This document shows positions 2,736-40,690 of a stretch of 64,000 bases of DNA, one piece after another (position 1 is the stretch's first letter; each line of letters begins with the position of its first letter). Origin of the DNA: Octopus bimaculoides (Eukaryota). A program made the translations under genes and the position numbers. Under the pieces are notes generated by a model, which worked only from the letters and a program-made list of their open reading frames with translations, ran no database searches and was not told the origin of the DNA. The stretch is taken from contig NC_068982.1 of NCBI RefSeq assembly GCF_001194135.2, positions 122,282,816 through 122,346,815 of the forward strand, in the 5' to 3' direction.

Positions 2736-3771
2736 TGAAAACATTCAATAATGAAAATAAACTGATGAACCATGTTGTACCAAAGTGCTGAAATATATTA
2801 TTCTATATTTATTGAACAAAGTGTTAATAAATTATAAAAAAAGGCAAATAATATTGTCACATGTGATAACTTTGTTGCTACACAGTGGTCAGTTTATTAC
2901 TGATGATGTCACAGGAATGACAAATCCTTGTTCCTTCAGAGAGATTTTAAAAATTAAACTATGATCAATGTATTGTTTTTTATAACTTTTAATCCATGAT
3001 GACATGAAAGAAATCAATTCATAACTCTGCTTTTTCAGGAGGAAATGGGAAGACAAATATTTTTTACTAGTTTTAAAGAAAAGTGTGCTTGCCTGGTATC
3101 TTGGTATGCCCCAGTACTGAAGTGCATTTTAAGAAAATATACATAGAATACCACTGTTCAACCTGTCATAAAGATTGTAATGTTAAATATCAGGCTAGCA
3201 GTACCCTAAGAAAGACTAAAATACAAATAATTGAAAAATGAGTTGGTTGGTGAGCAAAAAAAAAAAAAAAACTTCAACAAAATTTATTTTACTTTCAGCA
3301 GCATTCTTCATTGTTGCCAAAGTGCTTGAAAAAAAAAAAAAAAAAGGAAAAGAAAAAAGTTGACAGTAGGAAGCAATGAAAACATACATGTTTGAGGCTA
3401 ACATGGTTTTGTTTCACAAATAAAGTAAATATTATATTTGCAATAAAATCATACCATCTTCAAGGAATACAGTTACAGAATACAAACTATGTTTCAAAAT
3501 GTACAATACAAAGTAAAATGTGATTTTGAAAACCAAAAAAATGAAGACTTCTTTTGTTACTTGGCAGTTTGTTGAGTTAAATGAGACTGTCAATTTCCCC
3601 CAGCTGAGTGATTTCTTCACACAAAAGGTTTTCTCAGCAAACATTAGAAAAGAGGTTTTTAAAATATCATTCCTCAAAAAGGGAAAATGCTTGATAAGGA
3701 TATTAAGTTTTTCAAGAACTTTGTTTGTGAAAATGATGCACCACTTTCAAAAATTAGTTTCAATGACAAGA

Positions 3772-4092: not shown

Positions 4093-6120
4093 TGTCAGTT
4101 CCAGGGAAGTGAGCTAGCAGAATTGTTCATATACCAAGCAAAATGCTTAGTGGCATTTAATCCATCTTAATGTTCTGAGTTCAAATTCCACCAAGGCTGA
4201 CTTTGCTTTTCATCCATTCAAGGTTTATAAGTACCAGCTGAGCAATGGGGAAGCAATGTTATTGACTTACTCCCTCCTCTGAAAATGTTGGACTTGTGCC
4301 AAAATTCAAGCCTAATCATAAGAGATACAATAAAAATATGTTTTGCTATTCTTTGTAAGAAGCTTGAGGTTTTTCTATCCTTCATTAGTTACCAGTTAAT
4401 CATTCCTCAACATTAGCACTTTAATAATTCATCAAGTTGATGCCATGTCAGGTGATCTCGTTGTATGCACAGAAGTCTGTTGATTAAGTAAAGACAAAGC
4501 AATATGAATTTTGTGATTTCTGTTGATTAGCTGATTTATCATTTTTGAATGATGTCACAATGAAACTTAATAATTCTGATCTCAAATAGCAAACAAAAAT
4601 GTTCAACATTTTCCAAGTTTAAAAACTGTTGTCAGATTTTAGAACAATAGATGGTTTCTGCTAACTTCCAGGATCAATTTTTAATTTTACTGTTGTTGCA
4701 GGTCCATCTACATTTATCTTGAACCTATTTATAAATGTATGAGTGCAAGACATTGCTCCCCAAACTATTCTTCTTTTCAAATGAAGCAAAATCCAAAATG
4801 ATTTGTTGTTAAAATGTCATATAGGAGACTTTTCAAGCCAGGATTTTTGATAATGATTTAAAAATTTATAAGGAGATCACAACTAATTGATGCCCATCTT
4901 ATTGACTGCATGAGAATGGTGTAAACAAAATATGAACCAGACACTCAAACTCTTGCCAAAGAAATGCAGTGTTAAGGATCTCATTAAAATATTTTAAAAG
5001 TCATCAGCATCACTGTCCTCCTCTTCCTCTTCCTCCTTGCTGCTGCCATTGTCATTGTTATCAGTTTACATTGGCTTTCCACACTGGTAAAGATTAGATG
5101 AGTTGACAAAACTCAAGTCAGTTTTTACTTAAATGAATAGGAGGATGATGTCTTACTTTTATGTTCCATTTTGATAATGGTTCCTGTATCTGGATGCCCT
5201 TCCTAATGCCAGTTGGGTATTAGATGAATTTTATCATGGCACCAGCACTAGAGAGGCTGTCATGTCTTCTCCAAGACTTAAGAGTCTTCTCTACATTGTC
5301 TCTACATCTTATATATGATTGTTTGTATACCTATATGACATTCTATCTGTAGCAATAATTTTTTTAAGTATATCAGTTTTTATATATTTTATGATGCCCA
5401 CAGTACTTTGTCAGTAAATGCCCCCCACACCTACTAAAGTTTGGACAATCCTAGTTCAATCAATAGGATGCTAGATGACCAACCAAAAAGATTTTAGTTT
5501 ATATCATATCACAAACCAACCACTGCAATGTGTTGAATGCAGATAATTCACTACAACATCTGAGTTCATCTAATTCTAAGAAGAAACTGTAGGAAAGTAT
5601 ATTTTACTGCTATAAATAGCATTATAATTTTAATAATTCATGGCTGATTCCTTAGTTTGCAGTGATCAGTTCAATTCATGCCATGTAAAAAACTACTTGC
5701 AACAGATCAGTGTCCTATGCAGAGGGAGGTTAACTCTGATTTGCTTTAACACATAAGAAACCAGATATAAAAGCTTGCACCAGCCTAAAGAATCCTTGTG
5801 ATTTAGAAAAGAATATTTTCCAAACATTTAGAACTTAAAACATCAGCTTGCATTTGTAAATTCAGTCGCAAGTTTTTTGGTGAAGTTTAGGTTGTCACGC
5901 TGAACAGGTTGAACCTCAAACTCCTTCATTTAACCCTAACAAATTAATTCATTCCAGTCCCCAACATTTGTAATTCTCAGTAGCTAGTCATTGTGTTGTA
6001 AATCTAAACAAAGCATTTTATAATCATGAGCAAAATAAATAAATGGAAACTATTGGTCTGCTGTGCTGGTAATCAAAGCTGCAAGATGAGATTAGCAAAA
6101 AAAGAATTCTTAATTTTTAC

Positions 6121-6243
6121 CTGCTGATGAATCTTCTTTTTTCTAGTTGTATAGCCTGTATTCTCTTTAAGGAGTGTATAGGGAGCCATAGTTTCAGACT
6201 CAACAACTGCATTTGATGAAGTTGAAATCCTCTGCATCAATAG
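6121..6243 (-). CDS. Internal coding exon (repeat unit 3) of unidentified minus-strand gene: LLMQRISTSSNAVVESETMAPYTLLKENTGYTTRKKKIHQQ
   Basis: Acceptor TTATATTTCTCATTAAAG, donor CAG|GTAAAA, 123 nt, open in phase 0; flanks homologous to the exons at 10895 and 17211. Confidence 0.8.
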
Positions 6244-7269
6244 CTTTAATGAGAAATATAACTAGTTACAAAAATATTCCACAACAAAGACACAACAAAA
6301 TAAGATTGAAAACTATATCTGTTTAGCCACCTTGAACTGAATAAATCCTCCAATAATCAAATTCACCTTAATTCTTATTGCAGTGGTTGTTATGTAGTGT
6401 GTGTGTGTGTGTGCACATGTGCATGCATGCATGTGTGTGTGTATGTGTGCATGCATATGTATGTACATACATACACACACACATACATACATACACACAC
6501 ACATACATACATATATCATTATCATCATCATCACTCTTTAACATCCATTTCCTATGCTGGCAGGGGTTGGATGGTTTGGCAGGAAGCAACAAGCCAGAAG
6601 ACTAAGCCATGCTCCAAATTCTCCTATGACATGGTTGCTGTGGTCAGATACCTTCCTTGATGCCAACCATTCTATATAGTGTGCAGGGTACATTTTCATG
6701 GCACTAGCACTGGTGAGATGATGAAATAACTCACAACAAAAGACATCTCAACTGAGTGGAGGTATATTATTGAGAGAGGTAGTGTTGAGAGTCTATAATA
6801 TGATAAACAGACAAGAACAGGAGTCTTGCTGCAGAGGAAGTACATGGCTTCCCCAGCTCGAAAGAGAGTAAAGAGATAGTGAGAGTATACCCTCAAGGTA
6901 TAAGGTGAATATAAAAGAAGGAATAGAGATAAAGGATCAAAAAGGGTGGGTGGATAGGTAAGTTTGAAAGAATGTAAAAGGAGAGTGACAAATGACTGGA
7001 GATGGGGATAAAGGTGAATGCAGTGAATGACCCCATGGGTGGAGGCATGGTTAATGGTGAATCAGTTTATGGGTAGGGGAGTGAAGGAACTAGGAGTAGG
7101 TCAGAGATGAGAAGGAGGTGATAAGTGAGATTATTAATGAGAAGATGTCAAGTGTAGGGAGATAAATGTTATCATTTAGAGCCTCTTAGTAAGATGACAG
7201 AGGAATAGGAGTTAGATGAGTTGTAGAGGAAGGATTGACAGGACCTAATTTTTTCTGAGATGGACAGAT

Positions 7270-10200
7270 CTTATCAAGCATATTGCCAATCATCTTGGTC
7301 CTTTGTTATCTCTTCTGTGAGGCTCCACATCTTGATGTTAGTCTTCACCACTTCATCACAAGTCTTTCTGGGTCTCCCTCTTTTATAGGTTCCATCCTTA
7401 TTTAGCAATCTGTACTTTTTATGCATCCACATCACATGGCCTTACCAGCAGTCTTCTCTCTTGTACACTATATCTGATGCATCTTATTTACAGTTTTTCT
7501 CTCAACATATTAACTTACAATGGCTTCCAACAGAATCATTTTGTTCAAAAGTCAGTTACAATGCTTTACTTGACTCATATACAAGCTACACTTCTTGTTA
7601 CTTGTCAGCTCTTGTTCCTAATTTAATAAAATTACAATGTTTTGTTTAAAAACGCCATCTGATATTCATTTACACATGCTTTTCAAAAGCACATTTAATG
7701 GGCTTTTTCACTAACACTTTCATACTTTAAATTAGTGACTGCTCTCCTGCTCTCACTAAATATTTGTACTTTGTTATACTTGCTCACTAATGTTGTATGT
7801 CCAGCAGATCATGCTAGCTTTATTTCTTTCTAGTTTAAATATGTCCTCTGCATTCACAGCTCAAGTTTCACAATTATGTAGCATTGCTGTTTATACACAA
7901 ACATCATACAATCTGGCTTTCACTCTGAGAGAGAAGCCTTTTGTAATCAACAGAAATAATTGCTCTCTGAACATTCTCCAGCTGGTTCTTTTTTAACAAT
8001 ACTTTCAGAACATTTTCTCCCCACTGCTAATTAAGTCTCCTAAGTAAAAGAAACTATCTACTACCTCTAAGAATCTTCTGGGGCATCCAAAAAAATATAT
8101 TTCGTATGTGTCCTTAATGTTTATTATTTCTATGCACCTGCTACAAACAAAGTCAACTTTCCCTGTTAACCATCCTGTTATTCCACTGCACTTCTTACAT
8201 GTTCATAGCTTGCACTGAGTACATTGTATGGAATTTCTACCAACACCTTTCTTTTATATTGAACAGGACTATTTGCTTGATTTGATTAGTGTCCTGTCAG
8301 TTTCCCTCCTTACTAGAAATTTAGACTAAAATATCTTTAAGGTCTTTTGATTCCAAGTTTTGCTTCCATACTTGGAACTTTGTCTCTAACTCTGCTACAG
8401 TTTAAACTATGAGAACAAGATCATCAGCAGAGAAGAATTTCTATAGGCTTAAATCTTCTCTGTTTTGGCCTGGAGAACTATAATGCATAGGAGGGAACTG
8501 AGAACCAAAGCCAGATGAACTTCTACCTGCACACTGAATTCATTACTGTGCTCATTGTTAATTCTCACCCTATTGACAGCACTCCTGTATATGGTTTGAA
8601 AGGCTCTTACCAGCCATTCATCAACTTATAACTTCCATTTGACCACCAGATCAGATATGATGGACTTTACTGAAGGCTTTCTTCCAGTCAACAAATACCA
8701 TCACTGTGTGTAGTGTATGTGTATGTGTGAAAGTGCTTGTACCTCCTTTGATAGATAGAAGGAAAATAGTTTCCTTATGGTTAAATATTTCTCCTGCAAT
8801 TACCTTACTAGAAAGAGTGCATCTGTAGTACTTCTCCCCAGCACAAAACAAAACTGCATCACATCTAGACTAACTCTCTTCCTATTAATTGTGCTATAAC
8901 TCTTTCTGCAACTTTCATGACTAAATCCAACAATTTGGTACCTTTATAATTACTTTTCTCTAAGGCCTCTCCTTTATCCTTATAACAGTTGACTATGATG
9001 CTGATACACCACTTGCTGGATATGATACCTTTTTTGAACAATCTGATTAACTATACAGGTTCTATAGGCTGAATTCCATTTTCATAGCTATTTTAAGCAT
9101 CTCAGAAGCTATTCTTGATGGACAAAAGGGTTTCCCTGTCTTCATATCTTTAATTGCTTTGTCTATCATACTGCTGTCAACTAGAATGGCTAGTCCCTCT
9201 ATCAGGTTCACATTAGAAAACCTCTCTTTTTACTATTCATTCTCCACATTTAACAACCTTTCATATTAGTCATTTCATGCCTCTTTCTATCGAAAATCAC
9301 AATATGTAAGCATATCATTATCCATCCATACACACTTCCCTCCACAACATGTTGATTTTCTCTGATACACTATCTTTCAATCTGGAACATCTCATGTCTC
9401 TAGTCCTAATGCCATAGAACATTGACAAACCTCTTGCTAATTAGACTTGTCTCTTAACTTCTCTTCTAGCTACCTTATATAATTCTCTACTGCCTCTATT
9501 CTCTTAATCTTTCCAAGCCAGTCTCTTCCCTGTTCCACCAACCACATCACTCTTAGTCTGTAGCACTTGGTAGGTTTTCCCATAATAACTTCCATTTATT
9601 CTCAGTTATACATCCGTGTCTCCTCTTCCTTGTCAAATACTTCAGTTAGAACATCTGTAAATGTCAGTTCAATAGATCTTTAGGTTTCCAAATCTTCCTT
9701 TTTCAAGTTGGTTTATGTCTCTGAATCCTTCTAGCTCTGAATCTGAAGTCAATAATCACCAATCCATGTTGAGTTGTACATTCTTCCCAACAGAAGGAAT
9801 TTGGATTCACAAGCATCTGTTGAGAATGTAGTTAATCAGGCTTGTGTGTCCAGCAGACTGATAGGTCATCAGGTGGCTGGCTGGTTTTCTGAAGTTAGTG
9901 TTGCAGATTATCAGATCATTTGCATCACAGAACTTCAACAGCTTTGTATTCTCCTCTAAAGCTGTAACATCCATGTACACCATAAAATCCATTGGGGTGC
10001 TGCCCAATGTGTCTGTTGAAGTCACCAGCTACAATAATAAGGCCACTGTCATTCATCATTGAGATAATTTGCAGAAGTACCTCACAGAAATGGTCCTTCT
10101 ATTTATCTGCCAAGCCAGATTGTGGAACATAGGCCAAGATAAATGTTACTGTAGCATTACCTAATATCAGTTTTAACTTAATCTTAAAAAACACTCTGAC

Positions 10201-10460
10201 TACTGTGATTACTTTCTCTGTCCATTTCTATGCCAGAGTATGCCTACACCACTCATGCCATCACTGCTACTTATCCAGAAAAACTTGTACCTATATTCCT
10301 TGTCCATAAGGTGGCTAGTAGAGGCTCCACTCCATCTTACTTCTTGTACACAGTGTACATATACATGCCTCTGTTTTAGCATTTCAACCATCTCACCAGA
10401 CCTACCTTTTGCTGTGCGAACATTGATTGTAGTGGCTGTAAGGATACGTTCTGAAGAGTG
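7270..10460 (-). mobile_element. RTE-clade LINE, long degenerate copy (APE endonuclease plus RT)
   Basis: CVQEVRW, FCDANDLIICNTNFRK, VFVDWKKAF, ADDLVLI and C-terminal GRPRKT motifs in order, with stops and frameshifts. Confidence 0.9.
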
Positions 10461-10894
10461 GGGAAGGTAACTGATAGATTATTTTCAGCTTCTGAAAAGA
10501 TTTTTGCAAACCACTACCAGCAGGATGTGAGTTCTTGCATCATATACATATAGAACATGGTGTAGTGTATGTGCTAGCTAATACCTGAAATAGTTCTAAT
10601 ATAATTGTTTCAAGCAGACATTAATTCATGCTTCAATGTCACAATATATTCATATATTTCAGCTTTTCTTTATATATTTCATCTGACCCTTCCTCTGAAT
10701 TTATTGTTGTTTGGTACCACGTGGTGAGTCTGATAAAATAGTGGGGCTGACTTAAAGTAATTGAGAGTCAATTTGATGGAAATCCAATCTACATGACTTT
10801 TACTAAATTCATGTAAATTCATGAATTAAAAACAAACAAGCTGGTGATCAAAGCAGCAAGAAGAGATTAAGAAAAGTGAATTTTACATTTTTAC

Positions 10895-11029
10895 CTGAGA
10901 ACTTTGTGTGCTTTGGCTAACAGCAGAAGCCTCTGGAGAAGGTTCAATTGTTTGAACTTTCCTTTCAAAAACGTCATCCTCATTATCAGCTGCATTAAAT
11001 GTAGATTTTGAAAGCTCTGAGGATAGATA
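10895..11029 (-). CDS. Internal coding exon (repeat unit 2): YLSSELSKSTFNAADNEDDVFERKVQTIEPSPEASAVSQSTQSSQ
   Basis: Acceptor TATATTTCTAATTTCAG, donor CAG|GTAAAA, 135 nt, open in phase 0. Confidence 0.82.
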
Positions 11030-11239
11030 CTGAAATTAGAAATATAGGGGATCCATAAGTTTTCAGATGATTTCAAAAAGTCATTATGAAAAACTTAGAA
11101 GAGGTGGCAACTGAAATTTCGTTGTATATTAATATGTTATTATTAAAGATTTTTAATGATATTAATAATTTTATTAATGTTATGTTTTATTATGTTTCAG
11201 ACCACAATTAATTTTGCTTTTATGTTTCTGACAATTACT

Positions 11240-12440
11240 ACTCCAAAAGTAAAGGCACAACGTGCATCTTGGTTAATCAAAACAAATTCAAACACAAAGA
11301 AATTACACAGTTAAATATGGAAAACAAGCTCCAGCACATCAGTCGATATGCAACTGACACAAGCAATTTATGGAAATAGGGATGGTGCTACATAAACAGA
11401 GGACTGGAAGGCCTATAACATCTGAAGAAGATGCTGAGTGAATCTGTCAGTCATTTCAAAGTTCCTCTTCTATGTCCATCTGTACTACTTCTACTCAACT
11501 GCATCTACTGAAATCAACAATTCATAAAGTGCTCCATAAGAATCTGAGGCTTTGAGATATACTGTGACTGCAAAGGCCCGACAAATAAAGTGAGTTCATG
11601 GTGTATCCTACACCAGCTTCACATAACCAGCCCCAGCCCATTCAAGTACCTTGGATCGTAGGGCTGTGCTTGAGGAGACCTTGAGTCATATACATCAACA
11701 CCAAAATAAAAATGAAATGGAAATTGTAGTTGTGATACCTGTGCCGGTAGCTGATGCCAGTGCCGCCTTGACTGGCTTCCGTGCCGGTGGGACGTAAAAA
11801 GCACCAACCGATCGTGGCTGTTGCCAGCCTCCTCCGGCTCCTGTGCCGGTGGCACATAAAAAGCACCCACTACACTCACAGAGGGGTTGGCATTAGGAAG
11901 GGCATCCAGCTGTAGAAACACTGCCAGATCAGACTGGAGCTTGGTGCAGCCTCCGGTCAAACCGTCAAACCCATGCTAGCATGGAAAACGGATGTTAAAC
12001 AATGATGATGATGATGATGATATTGCAAGCAATTAAGGTAAATGACCAACTGCAATGGAAAGAATTTGCTGTTAAAATTCTGCAAACAATTCAAAGAAGA
12101 TGATTTCTTTAATTGCATTTGCTTCCATGCGTCTGGAAAAACTTAAACAAAATGCAAGAATTTGAGGATCAGAAAATACCCACATTACTAGGGAAATCAA
12201 ACATAACATGTGTGGTGCAGGATTTTGTGCAACAAAGGTATTGGTCCATTTTTCTTTTTGGAAAAGACAATAACAGCTGATACATACCTTAATGTTCTAA
12301 AATAATACACTGTGCCACAACTAGAAGAGCTCCATCCAAATGTCATCCTTCTGCAAGATGGAGCTCCCCTCAGATTTTTAAATGAAAGGTTTCCAGATTG
12401 CTGGATAGGAAAAGGTGGCCTGATTCCTTGGCAAGTGTGG
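11240..12440 (+). mobile_element. Tc1/mariner-superfamily transposase remnant (DUF4817-type N-terminal HTH), interrupted by an RTE 3' end
   Basis: VKYGKQAPAHQSICN.HKQFMEIG..HKQRTGRP, then after the insertion LQAIKVNDQLQWKEFAVKIL...LQDGAP...FLNERFPDCWIGKGGLIPW. Confidence 0.75.
11600..12022 (+). mobile_element. RTE LINE 3' UTR-type element ending in (GAT)n
   Basis: GGCACATAAAAAGCACC-type internal repeats, TTAGGAAGGGCATCCAGC core, CCATGCTAGCATGG...GATGATGAT tail. Confidence 0.8.
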
Positions 12441-12479
12441 AAGGATCTCGGATCAATTCAAATGAAATGAACAACTACC

Positions 12480-12700
12480 CTTGGCAGTGTCTCTCTTAAT
12501 TTCTTCTCTCTCTTGTTATGAATTTGCTGCACTGTGTCCTATACCTGACAAGAGCAACCCCACTGACACTGCCAATTATTGACCTGTTACTCTCAATTCC
12601 AATATCTCAAAGATGATAGAAACAGTCATCAACACACACATTCTCCAATACTTTGGCATGCAAAACCTATTAGCTGCAAATAAGCCACCTCACTCTAACA
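12480..12700 (+). mobile_element. CR1/Jockey-like RT fragment
   Basis: Reads as NPTDTANY.PVTLNSNISKMIETVINTHILQY (RT N-terminal region). Confidence 0.6.
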
Positions 12701-13139
12701 GAAGCTTTTTGTTAGATCACTGACCACTTCCCAGCACCTACACCATCATCCACACGCCTACACATGCACACATGCACACGTCAATGTCACCAGCACCCTT
12801 CCACATGCACACACATGCTCTCACATACACACGCACGCGCACCTTCATTTTTGGATCACCACTACTTTATTATCTCCCCTTGTTCCTAGTTCTTCTGTGT
12901 GACCCCTCTGTCTGGCATTTGCCATGATAGATCGCTAGCCACTACACCTTTTTCTATTTTCTCTCCCAGTTTATTTCTGTGTTCCTTTCTGTCAAAGAGC
13001 GTAGGCTTGAAACATAAAAGACTTTCTCACTTCCCTAGCATTAAACTAATACATCTGTTTGTTATTCACACACTCATCTTTGTCTTTTTTTTTTTTTTGT
13101 AAATTCTCACTAAACATAAATATAACTACATCAAATGTA

Positions 13140-13672
13140 GTGTACAAGAAAGAAGAGTGCACTGGTATAGTCATGTGATGAGTATAGATGAGAACAGCTC
13201 TGTAAAGAAGTGCCAATCTCTAACAGTGGAGGGAACCTGTCAAAGAGGTAGACCCAGGAAGACATGGGATGAGGTGATAAAATATATTCTTCATATGTTG
13301 AGTCACATGGAGGCAATGACAAGTGACTGAGACTTTTGATGATTTACTGTGCTTGAGAAGATATGTCAAGCTAAGTGAAATTGTGGTCATGGCCAGTGCC
13401 AATGACATATAAAAGGCACTTGTGCCAGTGATATGTAAAAGGCATCAGTGCCAGTGACACGTAAAAAGCACCCATGCCAATGACATATAAAAGGCACCTG
13501 TGCTGGTGAAACATAAAAGGGTACCCATACCAGTGCTATGTAAAAGACACCCAGTACACTCTGTAAAGTGGTAGATGTTAGGAAGGGCATCCAGCTTACC
13601 AGCTCCAGTCAAACTGTCTAATTCATGCTAGCATGTAAAACAGATGTTAAATGATGATGATGATGATGATGA

Positions 13673-13675
<3 letters not shown>
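13140..13675 (+). mobile_element. RTE LINE 3' end (ORF C-terminus plus 3' UTR)
   Basis: RGRPRKTWDEV, then tandem GTGCCAGTGACAYRTAAAAGGCA units and a (GAT)n tail. Confidence 0.85.
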
Positions 13676-13714
<39 letters not shown>

Positions 13715-13948
13715 NNNNNNNNNNNNNNNNNNNNNNNNNNNNNNNNNNNNNNNNNNNNNNNNNNNNNNNNNNNNNNNNNNNNNNNNNNNNNNNNNNNNNN
13801 NNNNNNNNNNNNNNNNNNNNNNNNNNNNNNNNNNNNNNNNNNNNNNNNNNNNNNNNNNNNNNNNNNNNNNNNNNNNNNNNNNNNNNNNNNNNNNNNNNNN
13901 NNNNNNNNNNNNNNNNNNNNNNNNNNNNNNNNNNNNNNNNNNNNNNNN
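13715..13948. other. Assembly gap
   Basis: N run. Confidence 1.
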
Positions 13949-14029
13949 GAGTAATTGATTTTTTTTTTCTTAAAGGGGAAAATTACTATTTTATTTAAAA
14001 TAAAATATTAATCTTTACCAACTTAATCA

Positions 14030-14720
14030 AAAGGCAGAAAAACAGAGAGACTATCTCTTTATAGACAAAGATCAGTTGCAATGGGAGGAGTTGAATCTCA
14101 TAAGAGTGGAAAAACAAATAAAAACAAATGGGTTGTACCCTATAATGAAACTCTTTTAAGAGCATTCAAATGCCACTGCAACATTGAAAATCGCTGCCTC
14201 AATGAGGTCAATTAAGTATGTCATCAAGTACATGCTGAAAGGAAATGACCAAGCTGCTGTTCAAATAAGCAATGGTAATGAAGTTAGTCAATATCTAATG
14301 GGTAGGTATACTGGACCATCCGAAGCAATTGCTTCTATTTTAGGATTTTCCATTCATGAAAGAGCACCTGCAATAGTGAGACTGCAAGGTGCAACTTCAT
14401 CCACCAGATGAACACAGAATATTGCTCATAAATAATGAGGATGTACATGGCTGTCAATGAACAACATATGAGAACAACATTGACAAAATTCTTTTCATTG
14501 TGCATCAATGATGACTTTGCAAAAATGTTACCTAATGCTGAAGTATCCATGTATTTCACTTGGAACAGTAGTAACAAAGAATGGCTAAGAAGAAAGCAAG
14601 GCAAAAAAGTTGAAGGCCATTTGAACATTTTCAAAGAAGAAACACTTGGTCGTGTTTATGTTGTCATACCAAAGGCAGGAGAACTGTATTATTTAAGAAT
14701 TTTATTGCATGAAGCTCAAA
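14030..14720 (+). mobile_element. Helitron Rep (HUH) domain fragment
   Basis: WVVPYN..LL..FKCHCN..SIKYVIKYMLKGND, GRYTGPSEA..ILGFSIHER, TTLTKFF...YFTWN, LGRVY...GELYYLRILL. Confidence 0.92.
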
Positions 14721-14785
14721 ATAGTATTTTTTCCTTTCCCACCATTCAGTGGTCGTGACCCAACAGGTCATGGCAGATACATCTA

Positions 14786-14849
<64 letters not shown>

Positions 14850-14850
<1 letters not shown>

Positions 14851-15123
14851 TGGCACTAGCCTGCTTATGAAATTAATGTACAAATGGCTGAGCAGTCTAC
14901 AAACATGCAAACCCTTAGCCAATTCTCAGGGAAATTCAGCATGACACAGAATGTGACAAGGCTGGTTCCTTGAAATACAGGTACAACTCATTTTTACCAG
15001 CTGAGTTGACTGGAGCAATGTATAACAAAGTGTCTTGCTCAAAAGCACTACACACCACTGAGTATCAAACTCATGACCTTACAACCCTGAGCCAAATACC
15101 CTAATCACTTGGCCACACACCTT
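14850..15123 (-). mobile_element. tRNA-derived SINE (degenerate)
   Basis: Reverse complement of the family at 3772-4092. Confidence 0.75.
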
Positions 15124-15177
15124 CATGTAACATATTACGCATGTGTATGTGCATGTGTTTACATGTTTGTGTGTGTG

Positions 15178-15237
<60 letters not shown>

Positions 15238-16319
15238 AATGTCCATTAATGCAAATAATTTCATCATAGTAGATAACATTTGTTCTTTTCTTCAAATGCC
15301 ATCAAATAAATTGTGAGTATAACAATGTACACACCATTGTATTTGACAGCTTTGAAAGCATTTGAAGAAGACCAAATGTCAAAATTCCAAATTTATTTTA
15401 AATCTTATCATAAAAACACCCTAGATAAATTGTATTAGATAACATCTTATATAACAAACATAATTTCGAGTCTTTTTTTTCTTTACTTGAAATCACCTCA
15501 AGCAAGGCCCATAGGTGACTTTTAGGGTTAGAGGTAAGAGAAGAGAGGCAGAAAGTCATAAATGTTAGTTTAAGATATAAAATAAAAGATAGCGAAAAGT
15601 AATTGATAAAAGATTTAAATGAAATATGATAAGTTGGTAATAGAACTGATGAGAAAATTGGTGGCAATAAAATACCAGAAAATTGGTTGACAAAGGAGCT
15701 AATAAAATGAAATACATGAGACATAATAAAAGAACCAACAAGAATATCAAAATGAAGAAGATATCAATATCGGGCAAAATACTTTAACCACTAATATGCT
15801 GCATACAGGTTGAGGTGTTGGACTCATGTAGATTTGACTCTTGGAGCGAGTAGCATGTTGTGCCTTTGGACAAGGCACATCATTTCAAGTTGCTCAGTCT
15901 ATCATCATCATAACTTAACAACCACCTCCCATGTTGGCATGGTTTCAATGATTTGCCAGGAGCTGGTGAGCCAGAGGACTGTGAAAAAGCACTACTGTCT
16001 GCTTTGGCATGATTTATATGGCTAGGTGCCCTTCTTCATGCCAACCACTTTACAGAGTGTATACGGTTCTTTTTGCATGATTGAAAATGAGAAACAACCT
16101 AGTACTGCTGCATCTCTTTCTCTCCCTCCAGCTGTCACATCCTTGATGTTTTACTTAGTCATGTGTGGGTGGGGGTAGCTGATAGGGCGTTAGTGAAAGC
16201 TCATGACTACTCAGACACATAAAGCAATTAGTGAAAGCATGGTACAAGCTTCTAGGTCACACTTTTTTCCTAGTGATGGTTAAGCAAGATTAGTTATCCT
16301 TGAATTTAAAGAACTTAAG

Positions 16320-16810
16320 GTCATATTCTAGAGGAAAACAATGGAGAGAATTTATTCCATAATTCAGCTATTTTGTGGAGGAGAAACATTATTACACAGA
16401 ATTTGCAGCATTTTTGTGAGATACCTTGGAAGCACAAATGCAAACAGTTCAAACGGGAAACCTTGAATTGATATGGCAAGGGAAAGAAGCTCATGTGAAC
16501 ACTTTCTGTAGATAAATGACAGAAGAGGGTAAAAGAGAGGATGGAGTAATGGAAAGATCTCATAACCAACTCTACAACGTATCTGGTTCTGTATGCTATC
16601 AAGATGGATAACACTTATCTGGAGGAATCCATTATACAAAGACAGTTTAGCTAATAAAATAGTAAGTAGAGATATTCAGTAACCTTAATAATCACAAAGA
16701 GAATGCTATTCAAACCTTTACAACCTAAGATAAAATTTTTCTTGATAAAGATTTGGCTTCCACCATGAGCAGGATGAACAGCTATCTAGAATCTCTCTCA
16801 CTAATCCTAA
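16320..16810 (-). mobile_element. CR1/Jockey-like RT C-terminal fragment
   Basis: IHLDSIQNQIRCRVGYEIFPLLHPL and ..IAELWNK, typical of the post-RT region. Confidence 0.55.
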
Positions 16811-16997
16811 CAGGGTAATTCTTGGCAGTTTTTATTTTAAACCCAATATTTGTAATTGTTAGAATGTATGGTAAGTAATTGCATTGTATTCCGAACAAAG
16901 TCTTCCAGGCAAAAAATGTGACAGTTGTGTGCTTAGAATTAGTAACATCTCCCTCATGCAAAAACTATGGTCTGTAATTAATCTATAATCAGATATT

Positions 16998-17075
16998 CAA
17001 TTTAGTGCAAGTATGGTTATTTGCAATTTAGTGCAAGCATGGTTATTTACAATTTAGTGTGAACATGGTTATTTT
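16998..17075. repeat. 3 x 26-bp minisatellite (CAATTTAGTGCAAGYATGGTTATTTN)
   Basis: Three consecutive copies read directly. Confidence 0.9.
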
Positions 17076-17210
17076 ATGTGCATCAAGGTAAAAAAAACAA
17101 AAAAACTTTCACTTACCAACTCCTCACAAAAAAAATTAAAAAATTAAAGAAACAAGCTGATGATTAAAGCTGCAAGAAGAGATAAGGAAAATGGAAAATT
17201 AAATTTTTAC

Positions 17211-17327
17211 CTGATTATCTACCTTAGAATTAGCAAATTTTGGTGCATAACCAGTTTGTTCAGTATCTCTGAGTTTTGCATTTTGGGATTCTTTCGCTGC
17301 ACTTTTTGAAGGCTGTGTTAACAGTGT
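17211..17327 (-). CDS. Internal coding exon (repeat unit 1): TLLTQPSKSAAKESQNAKLRDTEQTGYAPKFANSKVDNQ
   Basis: Acceptor TTATATTTCTACTTGAAG, donor CAG|GTAAAA, 117 nt, open in phase 0. Confidence 0.8.
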
Positions 17328-17689
17328 CTTCAAGTAGAAATATAATCAGTCATAACAATATTCTATGCCATAAATACAAAATAAATAAATAAATAAACTG
17401 AAAACTTTGCTGTCTAGTCAGCTTAAATTCCTCTTCTCCACCCACTATTCCTGGGAAGGAATAGAGCTCCATAAGGTTCTCTCAGAAGCAACCATCATTA
17501 CACTATCCAGCTGGATTCCCAAGCATGATCAACTGAGACTTATGGATATTATCCAACCATCTCATTCTTGGTCTATTGCTAGGTCATTTGTTGGTTGGTT
17601 AAGTTTAAGGAATCCATCTCGCAATTCTTTCAAATAATACAAAGTTCAAGTTTCTATTTACTATCACCAAATACTCTACGGCATGGCAC

Positions 17690-18910
17690 TGATGCATTTT
17701 ATCATGTCATCAGCTTTAGAGATGGTATTTATAGCAGGACTTTAGAGTTCACTCTATCGTGTATTAAGTTTTGCTTGGAGATACTTCTCTCTTAGACAGG
17801 TTGCTTGCACTGTAGTATACAGAGTCCACACCTCCCTTGTGCATGCATAGCAGCCATCTTTTTGCGGTTGTGCAGGTGAAACACTGTGGTGATGATGAGC
17901 AGGTTATGCACTGCACAAGAGATTCAATGGATATTCTTCTGAAGCATTCCCAGTCACTAAAGGAATCACCTACGTTGTTCAGCATGATGTTTTCAGCAAT
18001 GCTGTAGGATGCCTTCTGCAGTGAAGACAATTCCAGCATCAAGATCAGATTCAGGACTGATGGCAGACTCTTCACATTGGAGAGGCTACAGACTAACACC
18101 AAGGTGGAAGAGGACTCAGTGTGCGAGTTCCTGTTTGCAGATAACTGAGCACTCAACTCCACCACAGAGGCTCAAATGTAGCAGAGCATAAATTGCTTTT
18201 CCACTGCCTGCAACAACTTTGGCCTCACAGTCAGTACTCAGGAGACAGGGGGGTCAAGCACCAACCTGCCCTGCAGAAGCAGTATGTGGAACCAACTATT
18301 ACTATCAAAGAGCAAACCCTGAAGGTTGTTGATAAGTTCATATACCTCAGCAGCACACACTCCAGATCTGTGAACATTGGCAAATGCATCACCAAGGGAA
18401 GCTCAGCATTTGGGCAGCTATGTGAATTAGTGTGAGAGAGAAGAGGCATTAGGCTGCTCACCAAGTTGAAGGTGTACCTAGTAGTTGTACTGCCTACACT
18501 ACTGTATGCGCGTGAAACTTCAAGGGTTTATGAATGCCATATCAAATATCCAAACTACTTCCACATGAACTGCCTGAGAAAGCTGTTGAAAATCAACTGG
18601 AAAGACATGGTCCCAGACACAGAGGTCTACTTTTGAGCTGATCTGCCAAGCATTTACACACAGCTGAGGAGAGCACAGGTCAGGAGGGTAGGCCACCTTG
18701 TTTGAATGCCTGATATGTGACTCTCCAAGAGCTTGTTCTACAGTGAAGTGGTAGAAGGCAAGCACATACAAGATGGACAGAAAAAGTGCTTCAAGGTTAT
18801 ACTCAAAGATTCACTGAAGAGCTTTGAGATCAACCCTGGTGTCAGGGAAATGGAAGCACACAACCATCCTGCCTGGTGCTGTACCAACAGATACAACCAG
18901 CCCTGAAGGA
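17690..18910 (+). mobile_element. RTE (BovB-like) LINE RT remnant, a different subfamily from the other RTEs
   Basis: IRFRTDGRLFTL.RLQ.NTKV, CEFLFADN, LKVVDKFIYLSS, KGSSAFGQL; many stops. Confidence 0.85.
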
Positions 18911-24700: not shown

Positions 24701-24869
24701 TAACAGAAATAAAAAGTGCTTATGAATATGAGTAATAACATGACAGTTATAATACAGTCATATAATGTTTAATAAATAGAACATGTTAGTTCAAAGTTGA
24801 CGAATAGTTAAGTCCAGAAAGATTCTTCAATGCATGAAGTTAAATTATGTTTGCAATAAAGCTTTTGAG

Positions 24870-25200
24870 AGGGACCCCTGATCCCTTATCTGGTGGTCAA
24901 TATGGAAACTAGGGATAGATAAGTAGCAGGTGAGAGCTGGGAAAGCCATGTAAAGAGATGCTACCAGTAAGGTGAGGATTGGCAACAAGTACAGCAAAGA
25001 ATTCAGGATACAAGTAGGGGTTCACCAAGGATGGGTCCTATGTCCCCTCTTGTTCATCACAGTCCTCAAGGCAATAACAAAAGAATTTAAGACAGGCTGC
25101 CAATGGGAGCTCCTCTATGCTGATGACCTTGTTCTTATAGCTGAATCACTACCAGAAATAGAGAAGAAGTTCCAGGTATGGAAGCAAGATTTAGAATAAG
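24870..25200 (+). mobile_element. RTE LINE RT core fragment
   Basis: QVGVHQGWVLCPLLFITVL...ELLYADDLVLIAES. Confidence 0.92.
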
Positions 25201-26781: not shown

Positions 26782-26829
26782 TAATAATAATAAAACAACA
26801 ACAACAACATTGAAACCTAATTCATCTGC

Positions 26830-29128
26830 TGAGATTGTTGAAATGCTTGAGCAGATATGTGTGTAAATGTGTGCTGTGTGCAAGAGGTACAATGCAGGGG
26901 AGTCTTAGCTAGACTGCATGTAGGCAAGAGACATTTAAACAAGTTCTTCTGGGTGGGAAGCAATGATGGATTAGGTGGCATAGGTATTCTTTTGGCAGAA
27001 AAATAGGTGGATAAGGTGACTGAGGTAGTCAGGGTGTGTGATAGGATTATTAAGCAAAGATTAGTCCTGTTTAATGTAACAATGTTATTTATCTCTGCAC
27101 ATGCTCCGCATTTTAGACTTGTAGATATTCAGAAGGACTATTTCTATGAATCCTTTCTGCAGACTATCTTGATGATGAAAGACAATGATGTCTTCATCTT
27201 GGCAGGGGATTTCAATAGCCACATTAGAAAACACTGCAATGGTTTTCATGGCGTGCATGGAGGTTATGGTTTTGGTTCCAGAAATGAAGAGAGAACAAGG
27301 TCATTAGAGTTCTGTGATGCAAATGACATAATGGTTTGTGATACCAACATCAGGAAATCTGTTGGCCATTTGATCACTTATCACTCTGGTTGGCACACTA
27401 GCCAGATTGACTACATCCTCACCAGAAACAGGGATAGGTGTATGCTTGTGAATGCAAAGTCTTTTCCGGGTAAAGAATGTACAACTCAGTATAGGTTAGT
27501 GGTTAGTAATTTCGGACTTAAGGCTAGAAAGATTCTGAAACAAACTGATATGGAAAATGAGGCTATGGAAACTCAAGGATCCTGCAAATGGGCAGAGATT
27601 TAGTGATGTCCTTAATAAAACCTTTGATGAGAAGGAGATAGAGATAGAGACATATGACATAGAGTTCAATTGCAAATTCTTATGGGACAATCTACTGAGG
27701 GTGACAGACCAAATCTGTGGTTGGAGCAAAGCTTCTGCCAGACCAAGGGTGACATGGTGGTGGAACAGTGAGGTTGACAGGGCTATAAAAGAGAAGAGAT
27801 GGGCTTGGAAAAAGTGGAAGAGTTGGGGTAGTAAAGTGCCATATCAGATAGTCAAAAGAGAAGCTAGGCATTAGGTGTGTCTAGTTAGGGCAGAAGAAGG
27901 AAAGAAGAGGTTTGCCAATGTCTTACATTGTGAAGATCAGAGATTTGAGGTGTTCCGGATTGCTAGACGGTGTGTTAGAGCAAATCAAGAAGTTGTGGGA
28001 GACAAGTGTGTATGGAAAAATAATGGTGTGCTTGCTCATAGTGATCCCGAAAAGAAAGAAATGTGAGAGAGCTACCATGAAAGACTACTAAGTGCGGAGA
28101 ATGAATGGGAGAGAGGGAGTCTTCCTCGTGTAAACCCAACAGAGGAACCAACTATCCTAGTTGAAGATAAGGTAATTAAAGATATGAAAACAAGGATGGC
28201 TGCTACCCTATCAGGAGTCACTGCTGACATGCTTAAGATATTGGGCAGAGTTGGATACAGTCTAGTCACCTGTATAGTTAATCAGGTTACAGTTAATCAG
28301 GTTATTCAAGAAAGTATAATCCTTAGTGACTGGTGTAGCAGCATTAATAATCAGCTGCTACAAGGGCAAGGGAAATGCCTAAGATAGAAATAATTACAGA
28401 GGCATCAAATTGTTGGACAAGGTGAAGAAAGTTGCAAAGTGAGTTAGAGCCCAATTAATTATTGTCCTGGGGAGAAGCACTATTGATGCTATTTTGCATG
28501 TGCATGAACTACAATGCTACATGGGAGTGAGACATTGGCCCTGAATGCAAGGACATGCAAAGACTAGAGTGATTGAAGCTGGTATGCTCTGCTGGATATG
28601 CAATGTAGGTAGGTACAAGACGAATTATATGCAGTGTGCAAGAGAAGAGACTGCATTGGTTTGGTCATGTGATGTGTATGGGTGTAGATAGTAGCATACA
28701 AAAGTGCCAATCACTTAAAGTGGAGAGAAGTTGCAGAAGAAGGGAGACCCAGGAAGACATGGGATGAAATATTGAAAGCTAATCTCAAAACACTGAGCCT
28801 TATGAAGGAGATGACAGAGGACTGAGATATGTGGTGCATTGCTGTACTCAAGAAGACCTGCCCACCACAACAGAACTGATACCCTAAAATCATGGAGCTA
28901 TATAAAAAATATCAGTGTGGGTGCGGTGCCATGTAAAAAACATTGGTGTTGGTGCCACAGAAAAAGCACTGGTGACAGTGCCACATAAAAAGCACCCAGC
29001 ACACTCTGTAAAGTGGTTGTTATTAGGAAGGGCATCCAGCTGTAGAAACCAAGACAAAACAAACTATGGAACTTGGTGTCGCCCCTGGCCTTGCCAGTTC
29101 CTGTCAAGCATGGAAACTGGATGTTAAA
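26830..29128 (+). mobile_element. RTE LINE, internally deleted (endonuclease, partial RT, C-terminus, 3' UTR)
   Basis: ILAGDFNSH, FCDANDIMVCDTN, SQIDYIL, VTWWWNSEV, GRPRKTWDEIL, then the 3' UTR core. Confidence 0.9.
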
Positions 29129-30998: not shown

Positions 30999-31110
30999 TA
31001 GACTAATAATAGTGTTAAGTAAAATTGAAATCTTAATTTTAGAGAGATAAATGTTATACTACCTGTGTATTTCCATGCAAAATAGTTTCAAGTTTTGTTT
31101 TGTTGTGTAC

Positions 31111-31146
31111 CTTTAATCCTCCTTCATTTTTCACATCAAGTGGCAT
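31111..31146 (-). CDS. Candidate first coding segment MPLDVKNEGGLK (exon 31111-31214)
   Basis: Acceptor TATTATTTTTCCAG, ACA-ATG context with an upstream in-frame TAA, donor AAG|GTACAC, phase-0 exit. Confidence 0.4.
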
Positions 31147-34749: not shown

Positions 34750-36790
34750 TCTTGGACAGTTTGACTGAGAACTGGTCAGCCATGAAACTACACTAGGTTC
34801 CAATCTGATTTGGCATGGTTTCTACAGCTGGGTGCCCTTCCTAATGCCAACCACTCGAAGAGTGTAGTGGGTACTTTTTATGTGCCACCAGCATGGGTGC
34901 CACTTATGTGACATTGGCTATGGCCATGACTATGATCTCACTTGGCTTGACAGCTTTTCTCAAGCATGGTATATCACCAAAAGTCTTGGTCACCTGTCAC
35001 TGCCTCCATGAGGCCCAACATTCGAATGGTGCGTTTTACATGTCACCAGTATGGGTGCCAGTTACATGGCAATGGCATCAGCCACAACCATGATTTCACT
35101 TGGCCTGATAGGTCTTCTTAAGCATAGCATATTGCCCAATGTTCAAAGGGTGCTTTTTACGTGCCAGTTATGCGACACTAGCATTGGCCACGACTATGAT
35201 CTCACTTGGTTTGATAAGTCTTCTCAAGCACAGCATATTGCCAAAGGTCTCAGTCACTTGTATCACCGCCATGAGGCCCAACATTTGAAGATCATGTTTC
35301 ACCACCTCATCTCATGTCTTCCTGGATCTACCTCTTCCACAGGTTCCTTCTACCATTAGAGTGCGTCACTTCTTCACACAGCTGTCCTCATCCATATGCA
35401 TCAACGACTATACCAGCGCAGTTGTCTCTCGTGCACACCACATCTGATGCTTCTTATGCCTAACTTTTCTCTCAAGATGCTTACACTCTGATGAACATGT
35501 ACACTGACATTACACATCCAGTGAAGCATACTGGCTTCATTTCTTACAAGCCTACACATGTCCTCAGTGGTCACAGCTCATGTTTCACTGCTGCGTAGCA
35601 TGTTTGCACACAGGTATCATACAATCTGCCTTTCATTCTGAGTGAAAGACCCTTTGTTACCAGCACAGGTAGGAGCTCCCTGAACTTTGCTCAACCTATT
35701 CTAATTCTAGCAGCAATGCTTTCAGAGCATCCACCCCAACTACTGACTTGGTCACTTAGGTAATGGAAGCATTTAAGTATTTCTAGTTTTTCCCTCTGGC
35801 ATTTGATGGAGTCTATTTTCTGTACATTTTTAGTGTTTATTGTACCTGTGCACCTTCCACACAAAAAAACAATTTTCCCTGTTAACCTTCCTCTGATATT
35901 GCTGCACCTCTTATGTGTCCATAGTTTACACTGGGTACATTTTATGGAGTTTCTACCTAAACCTTTTCTACAGATCGAGCAGAGCCATCTACCAGAAGGA
36001 ATTTGTGATTTGTCTACTCTCCTTCTTACTAAGACTTTGGTTTTTGCTAGATTAACACTAAAGCCCTTTGATTCTAGACCTTTCTTCCACATCTGAAATT
36101 TCTTCTCAAGTTCTGGTAGTGATTCAGCAAAGGGGAACTCCCAGGGGCAGCCTATCTTAAATTCTTCTGTTATTGTCTGGAGGACTATGATGAACAAGAG
36201 GGAGCTGAGGACCGATACTTGGTGAACCCCAACTTGTACCCTAAATTCATTGCTAGCCCTTACCTTACTGACAACATTCCTGTACATCGCTTGTACAGTT
36301 CTCACTAACCACTCATCTATCCCTAGCTTCTGCATTGACCACCAGATAAGGGAGCAGAAGACTTTATCAAAGGCTTTCTCTATGTCAACAAAAGCCAGGT
36401 ACAGGGGTTTATTTTTGGCTAGATATTTCTCCTGCAGTTGCCTAACCAGGAATATAGCATCAGTAATGCTCCTGCTTGGCACAGATTGAAACTGCAACTC
36501 ATCTACACTAACCCTCTTCCTAATTGGTCTATGACTCTCCATAACTTTCATCACCTGATCTAACAATTTGATACCTCTGTAATTATTTCTATCTAAGGTG
36601 TCACCTTTGTCTTTCTAGCTATAATGCTGCAACACCAACCATTTGGTATGACTCCCTCGCGCAAAGCCTGATTAACTATACAGGTGACTAGGCTATATCC
36701 TACTCCACCAGATAGTTTAAGCATCAATGGTGATTCCTGAAGGGCAGGGGAATTTCCCTGTCTTTATATCTTTATGAGACTGATAATTTA
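34750..36790 (-). mobile_element. RTE LINE 3' half with 291-aa RT ORF, C-terminus and 3' UTR
   Basis: ORF 35691..36566: TDAIFLVRQLQEKYL, AFVDIEKAFDKV, GVHQVSVLSSLLF, PHD-like CSICRK..C..C..W.H..C; the YADD motif is deleted. Confidence 0.93.
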
Positions 36791-40060: not shown

Positions 40061-40189
40061 CAAGAGCAAATATGTTTGGCTGGATCAGTGTTATTATCTC
40101 CTTACCATTCAGCCTCTTTCTTCTGGTTATTTCATCATGTTCAACCATTATTCCCTACACCTACTTTCCTTAGTGATCACCACATTACA

Positions 40190-40690
40190 GTATGTAGTAC
40201 CCTGTCAAAGACCTTTTTCAAGTGAGCAAAGGTCAAGTATAGTGGGTTACTCTTAGCCAAGTATTTCTCTTGAAGTTGTCTCTCTAAGAAGACTGAATCT
40301 CTAGTACCTCTTCCAGGCATGAAACTAATCTGCATTTCATTTAAGCTAACCGTTTTTGATCAATTGTTCTTGGATTCTTCTGGTCCAACAATTTGATGCC
40401 GCTGTAACATCTTTTCTCTAAAGTATCTCTTTTGCCTTTGTAGCAGTTGACAATGATATTGCTACACCAGTCAGTGGGTATGACACTTTCCTGTATTACT
40501 CAACTATTTCGATGGCCATTATCTATCCTTCTTCATCAGATATTTTGAGTATCTTAGAAACCATCCCTGATGGACGAGCAGTTTTCCCTATATTCATGTC
40601 CTTAATATATGTAAGATGCTTAAAAGTATAGCAAATTGGAAAGTTTCTGGGTCAATGGCATTCAGGGATTCTCCAAGCAAGCACAAGTAT
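40190..40690 (-). mobile_element. RTE LINE RT N-terminal fragment
   Basis: EMQISFMPGRGTRDSVFLERQLQEKYLAK..LKKVFDRV. Confidence 0.85.

Follow-up and report, generated by a model that had tools for sequence, protein, structure and literature searches.

Three tandemly duplicated exons of an octopus FAM228B-like gene recognized from their intron flanks

We analyzed a 64,000-nucleotide stretch of the Octopus bimaculoides genome (contig NC_068982.1, positions 122,282,816 to 122,346,815), hereafter the window, in which three coding exons of the FAM228B-like gene LOC106877912 lie on the minus strand at a spacing of 4.6-6.2 kb. These exons, designated A, B and C, have homologous intron flanks, whereas their coding sequences are no more similar to one another than shuffled sequences. 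This agrees with an initial annotation of the same DNA, which had proposed that the coding sequence had diverged more than the splice context. The comparison with Octopus sinensis revealed, in addition, that the exons differ about three times as much as the introns between the two species. Our preferred explanation, to which we assign a probability of roughly 0.7, interprets the flanks as neutral relics of an old duplication and the exon cores as scrambled by protein evolution at a faster than neutral rate.

Three exons of a FAM228B-like gene and their flanks

The initial annotation had predicted three minus-strand exons of 117, 135 and 123 nt, all in phase 0-0 and with a common donor, and had assigned them to an unrecognized, probably disordered protein. 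All three exons are present at the predicted places (Table 1), but the protein turned out to belong to an annotated gene. In an exhaustive HMMER search, the joined A+B+C peptide matched residues 29-153 of XP_014782454.1 with 100% identity over all 125 residues, including the junctions. This entry is 'protein FAM228B isoform X3 [Octopus bimaculoides]', a product of the minus-strand gene LOC106877912, for which RefSeq contains the proteins XP_014782451-55. RefSeq already lists exons A, B and C as coding exons 2-4 of this gene. A word-indexed protein search with the same 125-aa query returned no match, a result that the exhaustive search revealed to be a false negative; a control query, the reverse transcriptase of a long interspersed nuclear element (LINE), confirmed that Octopus proteins were present in the word-indexed collection. 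Residues 9-45 of the joined peptide were also matched by a 2862-aa acidic protein built from repeats of ~180 residues (E=2e-8, 30% identity over 37 residues), a similarity that was judged to be compositional. A literature search found no paper on the octopus FAM228B gene.

For the comparison between species, loci of ~70 kb each were used from O. bimaculoides (L001), O. sinensis (L002) and O. vulgaris (L003). The window corresponds to L001 in reverse complement, with identical gaps, and a window coordinate equals 36147 minus the L001 coordinate. A whole-protein search returned four more clusters, which comprised the remaining isoforms of O. bimaculoides, four isoforms from O. sinensis (LOC115225466) and two gene models from O. 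vulgaris. Using an exact spliced mapper, every isoform could be placed on its own locus with canonical sites. In total, four O. bimaculoides, four O. sinensis and two O. vulgaris isoforms were mapped, and exons A, B and C were found at exactly the boundaries given in Table 1. Eleven coding exons make up the O. bimaculoides gene, with lengths of 84, 117, 135, 123, 70, 92, 72, 198, 75, 233 and 55 nt.

Because A, B and C are all in phase 0-0 in the mapped coding sequences, each of them can be skipped without loss of the reading frame. All annotated long isoforms carry A+B+C, and others contain A+C or A+B. In the O. sinensis isoform X3 (XP_036354495.1) exon B is skipped and A is joined directly to C, and in the O. 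vulgaris model CAI9718011.1 exon C is skipped and B is joined directly to exon F. The O. bimaculoides isoform X2 uses an internal donor of exon A (AAG/GTAGAT after 17223; slashes mark splice sites), which is located 12 nt upstream of the main donor; its usage (17211-17223) leads to a 105-nt form of the exon and the loss of the residues VDNQ. As these isoforms drop just one exon at a time, A, B and C are independent cassette exons and not mutually exclusive ones, judged from the annotated gene models.

The family PF28229 (FAM228) is recorded for XP_014782454.1, for the related isoform clusters and for the gene products of all three loci; this assignment stems from precomputed annotation, and the local Pfam copy did not return PF28229. 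A phmmer search against PDB matched residues 221-392 to residues 49-224 of 9ijj chain q, the mouse 'Protein FAM228B' (E=6.5e-17), and the match to Chlamydomonas FAP239 (7n61) was weak (E=0.099). Mouse FAM228B has been modelled on the C2 microtubule of the central apparatus of the sperm axoneme, in the base beneath CFAP65 (PMC12297659), and the octopus gene would be expected to be expressed in sperm or cilia. The octopus protein resembles the FAM228B/FAP239 C2 proteins in that its C-terminal ~170 residues match mouse FAM228B, but it differs in having extra N-terminal residues. Chain q has 232 residues, is matched from residue 49 on, and has no counterpart of the ~150-residue octopus N-terminus encoded by exon 1 and exons A-C; when exons D and E are included, ~170-210 additional N-terminal residues are without a detectable counterpart in this chain. 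The region encoded by A-C is hydrophilic. In an AlphaFold2 model, residues 1-144 had predicted local distance difference test (pLDDT) values of 26-37 and no secondary structure, and helices started at residue 145. Thus, while the protein is not an unrecognized one, the predicted disorder fits a hydrophilic region that is unstructured in a low-confidence model, and the extension of ~150 residues that exons 1, A, B and C place ahead of the conserved FAM228 domain is probably disordered.

The tandem array of symmetric exons that had been proposed is borne out by the consecutive positions of the exons in the RefSeq models and by the homology of their flanks. On the minus strand, all three exons end with CAG/GTAAAAAT, and the sequence CAGGTAAAAAT has three exact occurrences in the window, compared with an expectation of 0.09. 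The acceptor flanks of A and C are identical at 28 of 36 positions, which exactly reproduces a count made by hand in the initial annotation. The flank homology among the units was detected by blastn with E values as low as 2e-15, and likewise by nhmmer. Paralog identity was 0.62-0.72 at positions -40 to -1 and 0.65-0.83 at positions +1 to +65, whereas it was 0.51-0.55 in the exons, equal to the shuffled null, and it fell to this null past about -100 and about +85. The strongest conserved piece, which had been under-reported in the initial annotation, is a 27-nt block, TCTCTTCTTGCAGCTTTGATCACCAGC, located 28-29 nt past each donor with at most two mismatches to the consensus. The block is rich in pyrimidines and YGCY motifs, is identical among the paralogs at 23-24 of its 27 positions, and is absent from the remaining window on both strands.

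At the peptide level, the homology of the cores amounts to a trace, with a best hhalign P value of 0.0085 over 12 columns. Frame 0 is open in all three exons, as had been noted before; it is the sole open frame in A and C, and exon B has a second one. By shuffling, the joint chance of an open frame 0 in A+B+C was ~1.3e-4, and that of any shared open frame was ~4e-4. The acceptors of the units are weak, with AAG in A and C and low splice-site scores, and a splice-site exon finder made for this analysis proved to be too strict, as even true acceptors scored low. Local folding of each unit did not reveal a stable or conserved structure (z -1.2 to +0.5), the pairing partners of the block were inconsistent between units, and Rfam and tRNA scans of the window did not yield known RNAs. 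Two coding interpretations of the block were rejected. As a plus-strand coding sequence it contains stops in units B and C (read by hand), and a mini-intron or micro-exon around its TTGCAG would have just 41 nt and would be without a consistent downstream donor.

O. sinensis and O. vulgaris also have exactly three units each. The acceptor motifs are near-identical between the orthologs, the GTAAAAAT donor is the same in nine of nine units, and the orthologous exons A-C are all open in the two other species, free of stops and frameshifts, with in-frame insertions or deletions (indels) of 21, 6 and 6 nt as the only ones. In the flanks, a 7-nt indel between orthologs alters the spacing of donor and block in unit A, and in unit C an indel of 5 nt lies just past the block. 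O. sinensis carries a divergent GC-rich stretch, ctggcggacggccacgatcgg (L002 ~18260-18265), about 100 nt upstream of exon B, where the sequences of O. bimaculoides and O. vulgaris match one another. An insertion specific to this lineage or a difference between the assemblies is the probable cause; the stretch distorted one forced alignment of the flanks.

Further units had been expected to the left of the window, but none was found there or elsewhere in the gene. Sensitive blastn and nhmmer searches of the window yielded exactly three units and no fourth one; a weak nhmmer match at 14237-14272 was read as a candidate and rejected. Further copies were absent from the other ~50 kb of the window and from the remainder of the three ~70 kb loci. 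The O. sinensis and O. vulgaris loci contain no N runs, and no fourth unit is present in their gap-free orthologous introns or in the rest of the gene. Therefore, the assembly gap in the A-B intron of O. bimaculoides does not hide a unit.

Divergence of exons and introns between Octopus species

A chained colinear alignment of 47 kb (L001 versus L002) served to quantify how far O. bimaculoides and O. sinensis have diverged. The introns differed at 6.29% of the sites (2732/43444). The respective values were 14.3% for exon 1, 16.2% for exon A, 20.7% for exon B and 20.5% for exon C, and pooling of these four exons resulted in 18.3% (83/453; odds ratio 3.3, p=4e-18 versus introns). Exon 1 is likewise fast-evolving, yet it is outside the repeat family of A-C. 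For D, E, F, G, H and J, which are six of the seven exons downstream of C, the divergence was 5.9%. When exons 1, A and B were compared with their own 100-nt flanks, the odds ratio was 4.4 (p=5e-10). The jump in divergence is located at the splice sites, with 17.9% in the pooled exons A-C versus 3.3% at +1 to +65 and 6.7% at -40 to -1. Taken together, these two flank segments differed at 4.6% of the sites (14/302), which is not significantly lower than the introns (p=0.14), and the 27-nt block differed at 6.2% (5/81). Because the flanks show no clear extra constraint, the contrast between exons and flanks results mainly from fast exons, and not from preserved flanks.

The Nei-Gojobori method was used to estimate nonsynonymous (dN) and synonymous (dS) divergence. 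For exons 1+A+B+C, dN was 0.232 and dS was 0.163, equivalent to a dN/dS ratio of 1.4. The N-terminal dN is ~3.5 times the Jukes-Cantor distance of the introns (~0.066, calculated from 6.3%), and the 70 nonsynonymous differences at 352 sites exceed the intron rate of 6.3% with p=1e-17. Lone synonymous changes were confined to just 6 codons, about the neutral expectation; therefore, the raised N-terminal dS stems largely from multiply changed codons. For the FAM228 domain, dN was 0.049 and dS was 0.025, based on 24 nonsynonymous versus 3 synonymous differences. Given these domain values and the intron-like divergence of exons D-H and J, the gene as a whole, and not just its N-terminus, appears to be weakly constrained between the two species; its overall dN/dS is near or above 1. 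The types of changes also differed. The ratio of transitions to transversions was 25:34 in the exons versus 1817:915 in the introns (p=2e-4), and the share of A<->G changes was lower in the exons (19% versus 35%). The excess of transversions implies that the exon changes do not simply reflect the usual mutation spectrum at a higher rate.

A proposed history of the array and competing explanations

In the history that we favor, one exon together with ~100 nt of upstream and ~60-85 nt of downstream intron sequence would have been duplicated in tandem before O. bimaculoides separated from the lineage of O. sinensis and O. vulgaris. The original array would have been compact, with a period of ~300 bp, and the spacers would have been expanded to their present length later, by insertions of LINE, short interspersed nuclear element (SINE)-like and other sequences. 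The flanks would have drifted at approximately the ordinary intron rate, such that their common origin is still visible. The exon cores, in contrast, diverge between species at ~3 times the intron rate and thus above the neutral level, and positive selection on the protein is the most likely driver. A compact ancestral array is suggested by the fact that homology ends ~100 nt upstream and 56-85 nt downstream of the exons, where repeats begin. From paralog flank distances of ~0.2-0.5, compared with 0.066 for orthologous introns, we estimate the duplication to be ~3-8 times as old as the species split.

Several points weigh against this history. The sharp end of the paralog homology fits a short duplicated unit and a selective retention of splice-proximal elements equally well. 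When the flanks from -100 to -1 and from +1 to +65 are pooled, 19 of 467 sites differ (the sum of separate flank bins); this value of 4.1% is somewhat under 6.3% and leaves room for mild constraint. Not only dN, but also the N-terminal dS is raised (p=0.002 versus introns), and a local mutational or RNA-level cause of the exon excess retains a small share of the probability. The evidence for positive selection is pairwise and comes effectively from one species comparison, with O. sinensis and O. vulgaris being nearly identical and no outgroup included, and because of this the acceleration is not assignable to a lineage or to particular sites. The AlphaFold2 model was built from 5 close sequences and is of low confidence throughout, which makes it weak evidence for disorder. 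Finally, the isoforms are documented at the level of annotated gene models.

The competing explanation that survives best, which we regard as possible though clearly less probable, holds that the flanks are functional. The GTAAAAAT donor sequence, the U-rich stretch, the 27-nt block (UCUCUUCUUGCAGCUUUGAUCACCAGC) and, at the weak AAG/CAG acceptors, UUAUAUUUCU would be splicing-regulatory elements under purifying selection that are needed by weak cassette exons, while the cores would be free to vary. Such constraint would account for a paralog identity of 65-83% at +1 to +65 and 62-72% at -40 to -1 when exons and deeper introns are at the null, and for a block with 23-24 of 27 matches between paralogs that occurs nowhere else in the window. 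The weak acceptors, with AAG in A and C, the skipping of the exons in some annotated isoforms and the pooled divergence of the proximal flanks, which is slightly under the intron value, are in line with it as well, and the flanks of alternative exons are often conserved, as Sorek and Ast reportedly described in 2003. However, the divergence of the block between orthologs is at the neutral level, an indel of 7 nt moves it in unit A, and another of 5 nt occurs behind it in unit C. Furthermore, 4.6% is not significantly under 6.3%, and the excess of the exons over the neutral rate suffices to generate the contrast even if the flanks are unconstrained.

More doubtful is the idea that the GTAAAAAT donor and the 27-nt block form a dedicated splicing-control module that was copied with each exon and chooses the combinations of A, B and C. 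It would create N-terminal variants of a sperm-axoneme protein, the cores of which would have been driven apart by sexual selection. If so, the fast exons and the preserved flanks would both be adaptive.

The initial annotation had considered relaxed as well as diversifying selection. Pure relaxation, in which the N-terminal exons are a drifting spacer and selection acts only against stops and frameshifts, appears improbable. The region is predicted to be unstructured, although in a low-confidence model, the paralog cores are at the shuffled null, and the dN/dS of the whole gene is near or above 1, all of which would be expected of a spacer. However, drift is capped at the neutral rate, whereas the exons have reached 18.3% compared with 6.3% over 43 kb of intron, and dN is ~3.5 times the intron distance. 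Relaxation alone cannot yield an exon divergence of about three times the intron value, and it is the diversifying part of the earlier proposal that the faster than neutral exons support.

We give slightly less credit still to a mutational or RNA-level origin of the exon excess, either by hypermutability local to the exons or by fixation tied to the A-to-I editing of coleoids. The raised dS of 0.163, compared with 0.025 in the C-terminal exons and 0.063 in the introns, would be explained in this way. However, the shift toward transversions (25:34 versus about 2:1 in the introns) is not, the share of A<->G changes of 19% versus 35% is opposite to an editing signature, the excess halts at the splice sites, and the 6 codons with lone synonymous changes are close to the neutral expectation.

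Very improbable is a cluster of mutually exclusive exons, in which the downstream block would be a selector that competes for one common docking site, as known from Dscam and 14-3-3zeta. A repeated intronic element is indeed located at a fixed distance from each duplicated exon, which is also the likeness to the Dscam exon 6 and 14-3-3zeta clusters, and an origin of selector arrays by tandem duplication has been proposed (PMC6071210). In contrast to these clusters, the annotated octopus isoforms are not exclusive, but carry A+B+C together or drop just one exon, and the exon lengths of 117, 135 and 123 nt are unequal. An RNAduplex scan of the whole window for a docking site found no complement that was better than plus-strand controls; the best candidate (-26 to -33 kcal/mol) lies in an open reading frame (ORF) that was read as transposase-like and for which Pfam gave no family. 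A stable local fold or a conserved structure was likewise not found in the units. Equally improbable, in spite of a window rich in transposable elements (TEs), is the view that the units are dispersed TE or SINE copies in one intron, with frames open by chance or an exonised TE, because only three copies exist across the window and the three ~70 kb loci, all in a single orientation and in a single gene, with frames kept across species, in-frame indels and all three exons spliced into RefSeq models.

Spacers, neighboring features and comparison with known systems

As the initial annotation had stated, the spacers contain unrelated TEs. Dispersed repeats were found in them, and 67% of the C-B spacer has matches at other places of the window, a fraction that includes a LINE copy of ~3 kb. 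Both blastn and tblastn matched this copy to others at 26.8-28.5 kb and 35.2-36.8 kb, and it had a weak match to Exo_endo_phos. The longest LINE ORF contains RVT_1 and a PHD finger; among named proteins, its closest relative comes from O. vulgaris (68% identity). With stitched ORF fragments, Pfam yielded no more than a weak match to an endonuclease and one to a Pif1 2B domain. The latter was a strong match (E=6e-14) of the plus-strand ORF 1163-1612, which was taken as a fragment of a Helitron helicase. A Helitron-like N-terminal piece read by eye at 14160-14758 (plus strand) was not confirmed by Pfam. Likewise, two minus-strand ORFs that by eye resembled a mariner/Tc1-type transposase (47242-47835) and a retroviral-type integrase (59351-60108) had no Pfam match at E<=0.001. 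The assembly gap is 3.3 kb away from exon A and 2.7 kb away from exon B, touches no exon, and is not crossed by a reading frame.

Downstream of the array, the GC donor of exon D is identical in the three Octopus species. Exon E (92 nt) is situated left of the window. D and E preserve the frame only jointly, and they behave as a paired cassette that is included or skipped as a whole in the annotated isoforms.

Table 1. Positions of the duplicated units and other features in window coordinates, unless a locus is named
Feature	Position	Strand	Description
Exon 1 (first coding exon)	31063..31146	minus	84 nt; MPLDVKNEGGLKVHNKTKLETILHGNTQ; donor CAG/GTAGTA; located by tblastn of XP_014782454.1 and spliced mapping
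Unit A, upstream flank	17328..17427	minus	homologous with unit C flank to about -100; TTATATTTCT, then AAG acceptor
Exon A (coding exon 2)	17327..17211	minus	117 nt; TLLTQPSK...KVDNQ; acceptor ttatatttctacttgaag/; donor CAG/gtaaaaat
Unit A, downstream flank	17127..17210	minus	GTAAAAAT donor, U-rich stretch, 27-nt block at 17156-17182
Unit B, upstream flank	11030..11047	minus	CTATATTTCTAATTTCAG; homology with A and C over the last ~18-25 nt only
Exon B (coding exon 3)	11029..10895	minus	135 nt; YLSSELSK...TQSSQ; acceptor ctatatttctaatttcag/; donor CAG/gtaaaaat
Unit B, downstream flank	10811..10894	minus	81% identity with unit A flank over 84 nt; 27-nt block at 10840-10866
Unit C, upstream flank	6244..6336	minus	homologous with unit A flank
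Exon C (coding exon 4)	6243..6121	minus	123 nt; LLMQRIST...KIHQQ; acceptor ttatatttctcattaaag/; donor CAG/gtaaaaat
Unit C, downstream flank	6065..6120	minus	27-nt block at 6065-6091; homology stops at about +56
Exon D	3093..3162	minus	70 nt; VEQWYSMYIF...; GC donor CAG/GCAAGC; spliced mapping; unrelated to units A-C
Exon D in the three loci	L001 32985-33054; L002 26317-26386; L003 25627-25696		O. bimaculoides; O. sinensis; O. vulgaris
Degenerate LINE copy	7277..10400	minus	endonuclease and reverse-transcriptase fragments; most of the B-C intron; unrelated to the units
LINE copies of the same family	35694-36614; 7277-10400; 26825-28459; 40156-40606; 24858-25196	minus; minus; plus; minus; plus	
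Assembly gap	13715..13948		A-B intron, beside an (AT)n run; L001 22199-22432

Tandem exon duplication within genes is said to have been surveyed by Kondrashov and Koonin in 2001 and by Letunic, Copley and Bork in 2002. The octopus array resembles such cases in that neighboring exons of the same gene, which are of equal phase, go back to one ancestral exon with its flanks. However, classic cases are similar in sequence and length and are often mutually exclusive, whereas the octopus cores are unrecognizable, only the intron flanks reveal the relationship, and the exons are unequal in length and are spliced in together or skipped one at a time. The subject is also treated in PMC8373072 and PMC6071210.

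The octopus array can be compared with two further groups of genes. Titin PEVK and the nebulin super-repeats are arrays of repeated exons that encode disordered segments. They share with the octopus array short symmetric exons in tandem that can be skipped singly and a low-complexity or disordered product; the octopus array differs in comprising just three very old units with scrambled cores and no recent homogenisation. Exons that outrun introns are known from the phospholipase A2 (PLA2) genes of crotaline venoms, conotoxins, abalone lysin and other reproductive proteins, and have been read as positive selection. The octopus gene has in common with venom PLA2 and gamete proteins that the exons diverge more than the introns and that dN is at least as high as dS, and the FAM228B family provides a link to sperm. 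In contrast to these proteins, which include secreted toxins and gamete-recognition proteins, the octopus signal is restricted to the probably disordered N-terminal extension, encoded by exon 1 and the duplicated exons, of an intracellular axonemal protein, and to one species pair.

No new kind of mechanism is revealed by these results, and the gene and its exons were already contained in RefSeq. For annotation, they illustrate that symmetric, weakly spliced and fast-evolving exons are easily missed by homology, and that negative results of indexed searches should not be read as absence. The array represents a clean, small case of a tandem exon duplication that is invisible to protein comparison, but evident from the intron flanks; the duplication is visible in the flanks rather than in the peptides because the exons evolved about three times faster than neutral. 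TE insertions would have enlarged the introns of the gene, starting from a compact array. In octopus FAM228B, a protein with a mouse relative that resides in the central apparatus of the sperm flagellum, the N-terminal extension is a candidate target of positive selection.

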